A stretch of DNA of 30,169 nucleotides from Fonticula alba ATCC 38817 (taxonomy: Eukaryota > Protista > Nucleariida). This document shows, piece by piece, positions 372 to 30,169 of the stretch; position 1 is the stretch's first letter, and every line of letters begins with the position of its first letter. The translations under genes and the position numbers were made by a program. Location: NCBI GenBank assembly GCA_000388065.2, contig KB932201.1; one strand, 5' to 3'. A model generated the notes under the pieces. It did no database searches, was not told the origin of the DNA, and worked only from the letters and a program-made list of their open reading frames with translations.

Positions 372-3300
372 ATGCCACCGCTGGCCGCCGAGGATGACGA
401 GGGCCTGCCGCCCTACATGAAGCGTGTGCGCAATGACTTTCACCCCAACAGCAGCATGTACTTGGTGGGCAAACGCCGGCGCCTCGGCCGGGCGCCCCTG
501 TGGTCCTATACCACGAACAATCTCCTGCCGTCGGATTTGAACCGGCAACGGCTGCCCACCGCCGAGTCCGGAATCGAGCTGAACCCCATGCTGACCGGCC
601 TGTCGGCCGAGTTGATTGGCTCCTCACGGGCCGCTCCGCCGGCTGATGGGCCTCTGGCTTCGAGTGTGCGCATGGATGATGCGGAGGACCCCCTGGCCAG
701 TGGGGCCGGGCAGTTGGCCTTTCAGCTGGACCATTTGCCCCAATCGCAATGGGCGCCGCCGGGCCGGCCGCTCGGCCTGCATGAGGACCAGCACCGTGTG
801 GCTGAGCCGCAACAGCGGCAGCAGCAGCACCACCACCACCAGCTTCTTGAGCAGCAGCGGCTTTTGGAGCAACAACGCGACGCCCAACTTCAAGAGCAGC
901 AGTGGCTGATGGAGCAGCAGCAGCAGCAGCAGCAGCAGCAGCAGCACCNNNNNNNNNNNNNNNNNNNNNNNNNNNNNNNNNNNNNNNNNNNNNNNNNNNN
1001 NNNNNNNNNNNNNNNNNNNNNNNNNNNNNNNNNNNNNNNNNNNNNNNNNNNNNNNNNNNNNNNNNNNNNNNNNNNNNNNNNNNNNNNNNNNNNNNNNNNN
1101 NNNNNNNNNNNNNNNNNNNNNNNNNNNNNNNNNNNNNNNNNNNNNNNNNNNNNNNNNNNNNNNNNNNNNNNNNNNNNNNNNNNNNNNNNNNNNNNNNNNN
1201 NNNNNNNNNNNNNNNNNNNNNNNNNNNNNNNNNNNNNNNNNNNNNNNNNNNNNNNNNNNNNNNNNNNNNNNNNNNNNNNNNNNNNNNNNNNNNNNNNNNN
1301 NNNNNNNNNNNNNNNNNNNNNNNNNNNNNNNNNNNNNNNNNNNNNNNNNNNNNNNNNNNNNNNNNNNNNNNNNNNNNNNNNNNNNNNNNNNNNNNNNNNN
1401 NNNNNNNNNNNNNNNNNNNNNNNNNNNNNNNNNNNNNNNNNNNNNNNNNNNNNNNNNNNNNNNNNNNNNNNNNNNNNNNNNNNNNNNNNNNNNNNNNNNN
1501 NNNNNNNNNNNNNNNNNNNNNNNNNNNNNNNNNNNNNNNNNNNNNNNNNNNNNNNNNNNNNNNNNNNNNNNNNNNNNNNNNNNNNNNNNNNNNNNNNNNN
1601 NNNNNNNNNNNNNNNNNNNNNNNNNNNNNNNNNNNNNNNNNNNNNNNNNNNNNNNNNNNNNNNNNNNNNNNNNNNNNNNNNNNNNNNNCAGCAGCAGCAG
1701 CAGCAGCACCTTCACACATACTCCCAGGGCCAGTCGTTCATGCAAACCAGCGATCAATTCATGCGCTCTGGGTCCATGCCGGGGCCATTGGTCGAGGTCG
1801 CCGCGATCCCGGATCTCTTCCCCCGGAGCATGCCCTCCAGCTGGGGCGAGCCGTTTGCCGCGGCGCCGGCTGTGGCCATTCCCCGGCCTGGTGGCGGCCT
1901 GGCGGAATCCCTGCTGGCCGAGGACCACACGCCGCCGAACCTGTCGGATGGGAGCCTGCTCGGCCCGAGTGGAGCGCCAACCGGGACTCCCGTTCTCGGA
2001 ACCCCGGTGGCCAGTCGACAGGCGTTCTTCCGGCAGAGTGCCAGCCTCGGGGGCTCGCGAGCTGGCTGGTCGCCAGCCGTCCTCCCACGCACCTCCTCGC
2101 CCCTGGCGGTGTCTGGTCGGGCCGCGCGCATGGCCGAGTCCTCCGGGCTAGCCGAGCGGTCGGTCCTTGGGGGCCCCCTCTGGAGGGACTCCCGCCGGCC
2201 GGCCGCTCAGCCGAACACGGCCCCACCGGCCGGCGCTGCCCCCCCTGACTCGGGTCTTTTCTCCCTCTCCCGACCGCCGGCCTCTCGATGGAACCAGGGC
2301 CCTAGCTTGGCCAAGTCGGCCGCCTCGGTGGGGGCTGTCGCTCCGACGGCGGCGGCCACCGCGACCCCTGCGGCCAAGGCACCCACCCAGGTAGCAGGCT
2401 CCCTACCATCGAGCGTCCCGACACCGGCTGCGTCAGCGCCGCCCGGTCCGGCAGGCAGTGTGGCCTCGGTGCGGGCAGCGCCCGAGCAGCCACCGGAAGC
2501 CCCTGCCGTGCCCTCGATCTTTCCTGTCGCCCGGCCGCCCGCCGGCACGAGTGTCCTTGCCCGCCCGGGCTCCAGCATGTCGGGCACCTTGGCCACCTCT
2601 ACCACTGTGGCTCCCCCGGCTTCGCAGGCCTCCGTGGCTGCTTCGGTTGGGCCGGCTCCCTCGGCCACCTCCGGCTCGGGGGCCAGTTTGGCAGATCCCT
2701 TTGCCGGTCTGCTGGCCAGCCCCGGGTCGTTGAACACCCTGGCCGGCTCCGCCGCCGCTCCGCCTGCCACCTCCATGGCCCCCGACATTCCCGCTGCGCT
2801 GACGGCGGCCGACTGGCCAACCGGGCTCGAGTCGCTGACTGAGCTCTCGCTCGAGGTGCCGAACTCTGAGGGGCCGCTTTTCATCGAGACCCCGCCGCTG
2901 CCCTGGCTACAGGGAGCCGGATCGGCGGACGCTCGGGCCCGGGCCCCGGCGCCGGCTGGCCCGCTGGCAACGTCGGCCCCCGGGACGGCGGCCCGGCGCC
3001 CCGCCACCAGCTCGCTGGCCACCGTACGCGATGTTTCCTCCTCGTCGGAGGCGTCCTTCCACGGCGCCTCCACCAATGGCCGGGCTCCCTTTGTCTCGCG
3101 CACTGGCCGCTATTTGGCCCTGGCCGTCAGCCAACTGGACGAGCAGTCCCCCCTGATCGGAGGCAAGACCTCCCTTGCTGTATGTTTTTATTTTTCGCCC
3201 TCCCCTCCCTGCACCTTGTCGCTGCCGTTGCCGCTGCCATTGCCGTTGCCCCCACCGTCGCCTCTTGCCTTGCTGGGGTCCCTTGTGGCGACTGACATTC

Positions 3301-6300
3301 CGCCCGCTGACAGGGGGATTTGCCGGCCCCGCCGGAGCCCGAAACATCGAAGCCAGCCGGCCCAGGCCCCGGTCTCTTCGAGGGGCATTCGGTCCTGGGG
3401 CTGGATGAAGATCTGCACACAAGCCCGGATGATGCGGGCCGGCTGCTGAATACGCCCCTGCCGTCGGGATTCCACCGGCCCGGGGCCTTTATCACACCGG
3501 CCGGGCCTGGTGCGGCCCTGGCCATGCCATCCACCGAGCCGGTGACCCTGTCGCTGGCAGCCAGTCGCAGTCTCCGGCAAACTCCGGGGACTGACGAGCG
3601 CCTGGCCCTGGACCAGGCCTATGGTCGCTCGGGGCTCTGGCCAGCCCGAGCCCCGGAGCCGGAGCCGGAGCCGGAGCCGGAGCCGGAGCCCGGGCCAGAG
3701 GCCGAGCTCGAGGATGAACACTTTGTCTCGCCATTCTCCTCGCCACAGCAGCTGGGCCTGCTGCTGGCGTCGCCGGATCTGCAGCCGAGCCTGGCCCCGA
3801 GCGCCGGCCCGGTGGCCGATCGTGAGCTGGCCTCGGCCCTGCTGGAGACCGATCTGCCGATGGCGATGGCCCCGGCGGCCTCGGGGCCGGCCGGTTCCGA
3901 CGACGCCGAATTCGTCCGGCGCATGAATCGTCAGACGGATGCCGCCGTCGTGGCCCAGGAGACCGATCCCCTGGACGAGCTGTCATTTGTGGCAGGCCTG
4001 CGCGCCGGGGAGGCCTCGGCCCCGGTGGGGTCCGGCGCTGCCGCCTCTGCCCTGGCCTCGGGCCGCTCGCCGCCGGCGCTTTTGTCCTCCAAAATCGGCG
4101 CCCCCAGTGCCTTGTCCTTGGCGTCGGCCACCTTTGCCCCACTCCCGGCTCGTGGCCCAGATGCCGGTCCTCCTGCGCCGGAAGCTGTTGCCACTGTGGC
4201 TCCGATTGTCCCGGCGAGTGCCGTGGTTCCTGCCCCTCCGGCGGTTGCCCCGGCCCCGGCGGCTCCTCGGGCCGAGGCCACGCGCGAAATCTCCGCGCCC
4301 GGCTCGCGTCCCCGGTCGCAGCTGGCATCCAGCCTCATCAGGATCCCCGGTCGGTCGGAGCCCCAGTCGGCGATGCCGTCGGTCGATGCCCGACGGTGGC
4401 TTGGCAGCGTGCAAGCGCCCGAGTCCAGTTTCGCCCGGGCCATGGCCGGTGCTCTGGCCGGAGCGGCCACAGCGGCCACAATGGCGATGGCCACACCGGC
4501 GGCCGAGCCGGCACTGCTCGCGGCGCCCGATGCCCAAGTTGCTGCGCAGCCCCCTGCCCAGGTGGCAGCCGCCTCGGCGAAGCTGGCCCCGGCTCCGGCC
4601 CCGGCCCCGGCCCCGGCCCCGGCCCCGGCCCCGGCCCCGGCTCCAGACCGGGTGTCGGCCGCATGCCGGATCCCGGTGATGCCCTCTCCGGTAACCACGG
4701 CGCCGGATGGCCAAGCCCAGCCCGTGTCCTCGGCCGTGTCCCTGGCGCAGTCACACCCGCAGAGGTCCTCCACGGTGGCGGCCCTCGCGCCGACCACCCC
4801 CCGGCATGGGGACTCGTACTACACCCTGCAGCCGGGCCTGAGCCAGCTGACCGGCACCCCCTCGCCGGTGACACGAGTCACCTGGCAGTCGAACCTCACC
4901 GGGTTCGGAATCACCGGTGGCGTGGCCCACCGGGCCGTGCCGCGACTTCAGAGCACCATGCGCCTCGGGCCAGACGCCGGCGCCGGTGACAGTGGCATGG
5001 CCACCTCGACGCCTGCCGGGCCCGGGCGCCTCAGGCCGGCGGACTTGTCGGCCCTGCATACCCCGACGATCGGCGGCACCGGGCGAGTGCTGCGCTTCGG
5101 CGCGGACGCCAGTCGTCCCCCCCGGCCGCCTTTGACAGCATTCGTGTCGCCCGGCTCTTCGCCTCCGGCCGGGCCTTCGGCTGCCATGCCGGCCGGTGCG
5201 CCGGCCGCAGCCCTGGCCACCGGGCCGGCCACCACCCCTGCTCCCATGTCCGAGGACACCCACGCGCATGCGCCGGCAGCCACATTGGAGCTCGCCCCGC
5301 TGGCCCGGTCCGCCTCGCTCCCCGTCCACCTGGACAGGTCTGCCCTGCCCTCGGCCACGGTGGGGGAGCCTGCTGCGGGGGCCCCCCGTGCGCGTGCTTC
5401 GACGAACGCGGGCCCGGTGCCGGAGCCAGCCGCCCTCTCGGCCTCCGGCTCTGGCCCGCCCTCTGGCAGGGCCGATCTGGCCCCTCCGAGGGACGATGCG
5501 CCGGCGGTTGGGGATCTGCTTGAGCGAGCGCAATTCATCTTCCGCATGTTTGACTCGCTGCTCGTCACACAGGACACCCCCCCTCCCGGGGGCCCTGGCG
5601 GCCATGACCACACTCCGGCCCGCGACGCGGCGCCAGGCACCCCCCAAACCGTCATTCGCTTGGGACCCGACGCCGGCCGAGCCATCGCCCCGGCTGCGGC
5701 CATGGGCTCCCCCGACGACACTAGCTTCCGGGGGGGCGCCCACTCGCCTGGCGAATTGACCATGAGCGCAGCCGCTGACGAGTCCCCCGAGCGGGTCTCC
5801 TCGGCACCGCCCACCCGGGTGCTGAGCCCCCCCTCGGAGGACAGCTCTTTGGCGAACTTGGCCTTCTTGGATCTGTACGCCCGGTGACCACCATCCTGCA
5901 CCCAGCACCCTGCCCGGTCTCCTGCTGGCCTGTGCGTGCCCGGCACGTTTGTCGACTGACAATACCGAACCCCGCCGCCCGCTTGCCCTTCGAGCAGCTC
6001 TGCCATCCAATTGGACCGCACACGCCTGGAGGAGCTGATGCCGTACCCGGACGCCGGCGGCCGGGCCTTCCAGCCGGCCTTCCCGCGGCTACTCAATCTC
6101 AACCTTTCAAACAACCAGCTGGACGGTGTCTTCCCCCGTGCGTGTGCCCGAACACATGTGTCCCCCTGCTCTCGAGCCACACTGACCAGGGTGTTCCCGT
6201 GCGCCCTCTTCCGCCCGGTCTGGCCGACCCGGCGCAGTGGACCTGATCATGTCACACTGCCCGGCATTGGCCGAGCTGGACGCCTCCAACAATGGCATCC

Positions 6301-30083: not shown

Positions 30084-30169
30084 GTGCGTGCGCTCCTGGC
30101 CGGCATCCTCCTTCGTCCTGGGTCTTGTTTTGGAGCTCTCTCTCTCTCTCTCACCCCCCTCCCCCCCCC

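Follow-up and report, generated by a model that had tools for sequence, protein, structure and literature searches.

Which 5' splice-site consensus is read in Fonticula alba, and what partner could have moved with it? The question is raised by a stretch of 30,169 bases from contig KB932201.1 (assembly GCA_000388065.2) of F. alba ATCC 38817, hereafter called the window, which has a GC content of ~68%, is interrupted by five assembly gaps and carries eight genes with introns. The donor sites of these genes share a GTGCGT-type motif that is confirmed as real and is supported by RNA. We consider it quite probable that the donor consensus has moved from GTRAGT to GTRCGY (mostly GTGCGT) throughout this lineage, with co-evolution of the U1 small nuclear RNA (snRNA) as the likely route.

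Donor sites with C at position +4

The initial annotation of the window had placed 34 donors and had reported C at intron position +4 in 31 of them and A in none. In the rebuilt gene models all 34 were recovered at the same places with identical hexamer counts, namely 17 GTGCGT, 8 GTGCGC, 4 GTACGC, 2 GTGTGT and one each of GTATGT, GTACAT and GTTCGT, so that 29 of the 34 conform to GTRCGY. The claim for position +4 was borne out (C in 31, T in 3, A in none) and extends to G, which is likewise never found there. Position +3 is G in 27 donors, A in 6 and T in 1; position +5 is G in 33 and A in 1; and position +6 is T in 22 and C in 12. The exon side is weak, with G at -1 in 20/34.

The donors are listed below with the coordinates of the hexamer, the strand, the intron and the evidence, where "frame model" stands for a frame-consistent gene model; the last two lines give textbook-type sites that are not used.

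3180..3185, plus strand, GTATGT: gene 1 intron 1 (3180-3313); frame model
5875..5880, plus strand, GTACGC: gene 1 intron 2 (5875-5997); frame model
6138..6143, plus strand, GTGCGT: gene 1 intron 3 (6138-6237); frame model
6398..6403, plus strand, GTGCGT: gene 1 intron 4 (6398-6495); acceptor set by the frame with high GC at third codon positions (GC3)
6627..6632, plus strand, GTGCGT: gene 1 intron 5 (6627-6852), which contains a (CA)n tract; frame model
7020..7025, plus strand, GTGCGT: gene 1 intron 6 (7020-7127); frame model
7241..7246, plus strand, GTGTGT (+4 T): gene 1 intron 7 (7241-7353); frame model
7431..7436, plus strand, GTGCGC: gene 1 intron 8 (7431-7503); frame model
9839..9844, plus strand, GTGCGC: after HIBADH exon 1; intron enters gap 9851-10607, donor unverifiable
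10649..10654, plus strand, GTGCGT: HIBADH intron (10649-10894); Pfam match on the downstream exon; partly supported only
13042..13047, plus strand, GTGCGC: RPC34 intron 1 (13042-13177); frame model
13265..13270, plus strand, GTGCGC: RPC34 intron 2 (13265-13421); frame model
13493..13498, plus strand, GTGCGT: RPC34 intron 3 (13493-13588); frame model and Pfam
13911..13916, plus strand, GTGCGT: RPC34 intron 4 (13911-14160); Pfam Rpc34 profile positions 80-185 before, 215-331 after
17123..17128, minus strand, GTGCGT: GPR89 intron 1 (17128-17034); frame model
16927..16932, minus strand, GTGCGT: GPR89 intron 2 (16932-16697); frame model
16583..16588, minus strand, GTGCGT: GPR89 intron 3 (16588-16476); frame model and Pfam
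16349..16354, minus strand, GTGCGC: GPR89 intron 4 (16354-16223); GPHR_N profile 1-38 stops at the exon end
15921..15926, minus strand, GTACAT: GPR89 intron 5 (15926-15792), which contains gap 15821-15837 in a poly-C run
15316..15321, minus strand, GTGCGC: GPR89 intron 6 (15321-15181); ABA_GPCR profile 2-92 before, 105-177 after
19334..19339, plus strand, GTGCGT: LIM/CH gene intron (19334-19496); frame model
23124..23129, minus strand, GTGCGT: RRM gene intron 1 (23129-23004); RNA contigs join 23002/23003 to 23129/23130
22563..22568, minus strand, GTGCGT: RRM gene intron 2 (22568-22441); frame model
24747..24752, plus strand, GTACGC: gene 7 intron 1 (24747-24872); RNA joint in X1, X2 and X4
25415..25420, plus strand, GTGCGC: gene 7 intron 2 (25415-25513); RNA joint
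25814..25819, plus strand, GTGCGT: gene 7 intron 3 (25814-25982); RNA joint, 4/4 runs
26472..26477, plus strand, GTACGC: gene 7 intron 4 (26472-26575); RNA joint, 4/4 runs
26672..26677, plus strand, GTTCGT: gene 7 intron 5 (26672-26816); RNA joint, 4/4 runs
27746..27751, plus strand, GTGCGT: gene 7 intron 6 (27746-27975); contig pieces stop at 27745 and restart at 27976
28196..28201, plus strand, GTGCGC: gene 7 intron 7 (28196-28316); RNA piece stops at 28195 and restarts at 28322
28426..28431, plus strand, GTACGC: gene 7 intron 8 (28426-28528); RNA joint, 4/4 runs
29362..29367, plus strand, GTGTGT (+4 T): gene 8 intron 1 (29362-29566), which contains gap 29473-29524 in a poly-C run
29813..29818, plus strand, GTGCGT: gene 8 intron 2 (29813-29901); frame model
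30084..30089, plus strand, GTGCGT: gene 8 intron 3, which runs past the window end; frame model
26991..26996, plus strand, CAG/GTGAGC, unused: in gene 7 exon 6; RNA contigs contiguous over 26816-27745
27986..27991, plus strand, CAG/GTGAGC, unused: in gene 7 exon 7; RNA contig contiguous over 27976-28195

In the rebuilt, frame-consistent models all eight genes stay open through every junction in the high-GC3 frame and have a stop codon at the end. Intron phases and the single junction codons were computed by script, and Pfam was searched exon by exon. These single-exon matches anchor RPC34 exons 4 and 5, GPR89 exons 4, 6 and 7 and the HIBADH exon, and in all three genes consecutive profile positions meet the exon ends. 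A GC3 filter on stop-to-stop open reading frames did not recover the exon limits, and Pfam searches with the long raw reading frames mostly gave no match.

RNA contigs excise the modelled introns

RNA evidence came from spliced contigs (X1-X4) of four runs, which belong to one 2012 study with two samples, aligned to positions 22701-28700. In these contigs each of the eight gene 7 introns is missing, as is the first intron of the RRM gene, cut out in every case exactly at the modelled GT..AG borders; this verifies 9 of the 34 donors, all nine with C at +4. Six of the nine introns are listed joints and three were read from contig pieces, repeat masking having dropped the joint rows; for gene 7 intron 7, five unplaced letters in the RNA contig place the first base of the next exon at 28317. 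No splicing occurs in these contigs at the CAG/GTGAGC sites 26991 and 27986 or at GTGCGC 27420, all of which are exonic.

The initial annotation had admitted that its donors in genes 1 and 7 were chosen partly by the motif itself, and the pattern might accordingly be an artefact of motif-guided gene modelling. Because RNA joints were found at all gene 7 donors, such circularity is excluded for that gene, where all eight introns, like the one in the RRM gene, are excised exactly as modelled. Frame consistency in every gene model also speaks against an artefact, as do the alternative sites: within 60 nt of the 21 complete-intron donors that have no RNA, there are 27 other frame-compatible GT dinucleotides, 41% of them with C at +4, and none of the 27 looks donor-like. 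We regard this explanation as extremely improbable.

Base composition does not account for the excess of C

Intron interiors have base frequencies of 0.12 A, 0.48 C, 0.17 G and 0.24 T. Against this composition, the probability of at least 31 of 34 donors with C at +4 is 1.2e-7, and the earlier doubt that the C merely reflects a GC-rich composition was thus not borne out. The absence of A at +4 is weak evidence taken alone (P = 0.013), and the absence of any purine has a probability of ~1e-5, by arithmetic from the same frequencies. Two further positions are also non-compositional, with G in 79% of donors at +3 against a background of 17% and in 97% at +5. Base composition therefore does not account for the excess of C at +4.

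A variant U1 snRNA as the proposed partner

We propose that the 5' arm of the F. alba U1 snRNA would read ACGUACCU in place of ACUUACCU, a U-to-G change that would place a G opposite intron position +4. Opposite this G, a C at +4 would form a Watson-Crick pair and a U a wobble pair, and an A or G would be mismatched. A G at +3 would form a wobble pair with the unchanged U of U1, and G at +5 and U at +6 would pair as usual. High GC pressure would be the probable driver on both sides, because the changes from A to G at +3, from A to C at +4 and from U to G in U1 each raise the GC content. U6 and U5, which act after the hand-over from U1, are assumed to be canonical.

The computed duplex energies are consistent with this proposal. 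Averaged over the 34 donors, the energy was -8.1 kcal/mol with the ACGUACCU arm vs -2.9 kcal/mol with ACUUACCU, and the variant arm paired better with every one of the 34, the three donors with T at +4 gaining a G.U pair. A G partner predicts far more C than U and neither A nor G at +4, which matches the observed counts.

A precedent for this pairing has been described in Mastigamoeba balamuthi, in which GUGCGC donors are paired with a U1 arm of ACGUAC (Roy & Bowser 2022, bioRxiv 10.1101/2022.06.08.495308). Both organisms have a donor core of G at +3, C at +4 and G at +5, and the genome of M. balamuthi is intron-rich; its U1 carries a single U-to-G change with a G.U wobble at +3, as proposed here for F. 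alba. The two differ at +6, which is mostly C in M. balamuthi and mostly T in F. alba. M. balamuthi is a member of the Archamoebae, whereas F. alba is a relative of fungi; since they thus stand in different supergroups, the origin of the shared arrangement is presumably independent. Entamoeba provides a second likeness, a co-evolved U1 arm and donor consensus, with GUUUGU donors and a U1 arm of ACAAAC (Roy & Bowser), although there both +3 and +4 have changed to U and the genome is AT-rich and intron-poor.

A variant U1 and +4C donors on one metagenome contig

A scan of metagenome contigs for ATACGTACCTG with the U1 loop-I motif downstream of it matched 31 loci, three of which (L005, L012 and L029, from one organism with ~55% GC) are full-length U1 genes according to Rfam; the other 28 lack U1 hallmarks and were rejected as chance matches. 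The U1 gene at L005:1638-1803 (+) starts with AUACGUACCUG and scores 70 bits over positions 1-166 of the Rfam model. It has an Sm site as well as loop I (GAUCAGGAAG) and loop II (CAUUGCAC), and is flanked by tRNA genes.

On the same contig, a TatD gene and a DNA-alkylation-repair-like gene contain seven frame-checked introns, with the donors GTACGC, GTACGT, GTATGT, GTACGC, GTACGA, GTGCGC and GTGCGT, of which six have C at +4, one has T and none has A. A U1 starting with AUACGUACCUG is thus found together with donors that have C at +4 in six of seven introns, on a single DNA molecule. This uncultured eukaryote and F. alba both have GTRCGN-type donors with C at +4; they differ at +3, which is mostly A (GTACG) in the former and mostly G in the latter. 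The comparison would fit a +3 base that drifts with the GC content, A and G being wobble-neutral opposite U, and a +4 base that tracks U1.

Weighing the alternatives

The initial annotation had suggested a rewired spliceosome, with a changed U6 ACAGA box, a variant U1 5' end or the loss of METTL16/SNRNP27K as possible forms. The variant U1 5' end is the part now favoured, on the strength of the duplex fit, M. balamuthi and the L005 eukaryote. The part in which a C at +4 forces a change in U6 or METTL16 found no support, given that Thecamonas and the Mamiellales have +4C with a canonical U1 and that the ACAGA box is invariant among 240 yeast and outgroup species; changes in U6 and METTL16 are not required by the data. 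Several points nevertheless weigh against a variant U1. Thecamonas trahens (+4C) and the Mamiellales, including Micromonas (GYGCGY), keep a canonical U1 (Roy & Bowser), and a U1 change is therefore not required for a +4C consensus; these organisms prefer C at +4 as F. alba does, and Roy & Bowser found no compensating U1 change in them. Canonical U1 copies are reported to persist in Physarum (Roy & Bowser), which may hold for F. alba too. A search of the whole window with Rfam gave no snRNA, the U1 and U6 genes of F. alba lying outside it, so that the variant arm is a proposed one. The donor sample is small, 34 donors from a single 30-kb window. Finally, the GTRCGY hexamer is insufficient by itself to define introns, as 15 unused copies lie in sense-strand exons, 14 of them ending in C; with 16.9 expected after shuffling, GTRCGY is not depleted in exons and there is no sign of selection against decoys at this sample size.

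In a rival view the donors are as described, but U1 still functions as a canonical RNA. As in the Mamiellales and Thecamonas, C at +4 would be tolerated, or it would be recognised by proteins (U1C, LUC7 or Prp8) and at the later U6 and U5 steps, and the motif would arise as a side effect of mutation pressure towards GC. The intron content of 48% C and the GC content of the window speak for this account, as do the precedents. Composition, however, cannot yield 91% C at +4 or, with 17% G in introns, 79% G at +3, and the total absence of purines at +4 is more readily understood with G than with U as the partner, which leads us to consider a canonical U1 unlikely. We hold it to be more improbable still that the key adaptation lies downstream of U1, in an altered central base of the U6 ACAGAGA box or in the loss of METTL16 or SNRNP27K. 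Position +4 does face A43 of U6 after the hand-over, and in yeasts the loss of METTL16 and SNRNP27K tracks the switches from A to U at +4 (Parker et al. 2023, PMC10581693), but the ACAGA box is fully conserved in 240/240 species despite these switches (Parker et al.), and Entamoeba keeps it as well. Such a change could also co-exist with a change in U1 instead of replacing it.

The GUAUGU donors of Saccharomycotina resemble those of F. alba in that the +4 preference has left A, but there it has moved to U rather than C, U1 and U6 are invariant and the driver is the loss of the proteins METTL16 and SNRNP27K (Parker et al.). The U1 arm ACUUACC was invariant in 236 of the 240 yeast and outgroup species, that is, in all those in which U1 was detected, and the switches between A and U at +4 were tied to METTL16 and SNRNP27K (Parker et al.).

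Returning to U1 co-evolution, we can also put it in a more complete form, to which we give somewhat less than an even chance: the code of F. alba would be fully switched, with no canonical U1 retained and donors with a purine at +4 essentially invisible, so that exonic CAG/GTGAGC sites are ignored, and the switch would be GC-driven and independent of Mastigamoeba.

Implications

It is rare for U1 and the donor consensus to have changed in compensation. Two new cases, Entamoeba and Mastigamoeba, were described by Roy & Bowser, who knew of a single earlier report, from Physarum, and deemed it more complex; Fonticula is not mentioned in their paper. Our literature search found no description of F. 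alba donors, even in papers naming both Fonticula and splice sites, and no paper connecting Fonticula with METTL16. The view of F. alba as an additional case of an already known kind, the pairing of U1 with +4C donors seen in Mastigamoeba, is partly supported.

If the proposal is true, a sister lineage of fungi would share the solution of an archamoeba, U-to-G in U1 with C at +4, and the route would be convergent and probably GC-driven. With a complete switch, F. alba would be the first opisthokont of this kind and the L005 eukaryote a further independent case, and U1 position 5 and intron position +4 would form a recurrently used natural "orthogonal" pair. This would also raise the question of how U6 A43, modified to N6-methyladenosine (m6A), handles a C at +4, for which F. 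alba would be a natural test; this question follows from the work on METTL16 but was not examined there. For annotation, a gene finder that has learned GTRAGT will make wrong calls in the F. alba genome, in which textbook-looking GTGAGC sites are not donors.

Intron class, genes and assembly gaps

The introns are best read as ordinary U2-type (major) GT-AG introns. All 32 complete ones begin with GT and end with AG, the final triplet being CAG in 26, TAG in 4 and AAG in 2. Introns of the U12 type (minor), with a /RTATCCTT donor and a TCCTTAAC branch site, were considered and rejected, since no donor among the 34 is similar to RTATCCTT. The tracts upstream of the acceptors are strongly C/T-rich, and CTGAC, CTAAC or CTGAT occurs within the last 70 nt of 16/32 introns; in some others such a motif was found further upstream by eye. 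As half of the introns thus have no CTRAY in their last 70 nt, branching may take place unusually far from the acceptor. The stretch between the branch-like CTGAC or CTAAC and the acceptor often holds a long (CA)n, (CT)n or poly-C tract, as in the introns at 6627-6852, 10649-10894, 16932-16697, 23129-23004 and 27746-27975.

The eight genes are as follows.

Gene 1: large LRR protein
9761-11802: HIBADH-type dehydrogenase, interrupted by gap 9851-10607
Introns 13042 to 14160, plus strand: RPC34 gene
Introns 17128 to 15181, minus strand: GPR89/GPHR gene
Intron 19334-19496, plus strand: LIM/CH protein gene
Introns 23129 to 22441, minus strand: RRM protein gene
24404-28701, plus strand: gene 7, a nine-exon orphan P-loop protein of >1,000 residues
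Gene 8, plus strand: start of a TPR-like gene, which runs off the window

The P-loop GQRGIGKT, a weak match to Pfam AAA_16, is the sole recognisable feature of gene 7, the whole of which is RNA-supported. High-depth chimeric joints, present in RNA and assembly contigs alike, link the poly-C runs of two of its introns (25436-25456 and 26534-26555); the most likely source is misassembly of low-complexity sequence rather than back-splicing.

Two of the five gaps (15821-15837 and 29473-29524) are intronic, each within a poly-C run, and leave the reading frames untouched, and the uncertainty that they bring is therefore limited to intron lengths. The gap at 9851-10607 (757 N) removes the remainder of the intron that starts at donor 9839 together with at least one HIBADH exon, and it is because the gap swallows this intron that the donor is unverifiable. 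Only a first exon of 26 codons and a stub of 12 codons are visible before the main HIBADH exon, and the N-terminal Rossmann part must sit in the gap; donor 10649 rests on the 12-codon stub and a junction codon that reads into SPAEVA. Gene 1 appears to extend upstream across the gap at 949-1688 (740 N). As (CAG)n flanks this gap on both sides (913-946 and 1689-1712), the break in the assembly was probably caused by a poly-Q tract. The remaining gap, 9028-9037, lies 23 nt past the stop codon of gene 1 between two identical 35-mers (8993-9027 and 9038-9072), and is probably spurious, the product of overlapping contig ends that were left unmerged.

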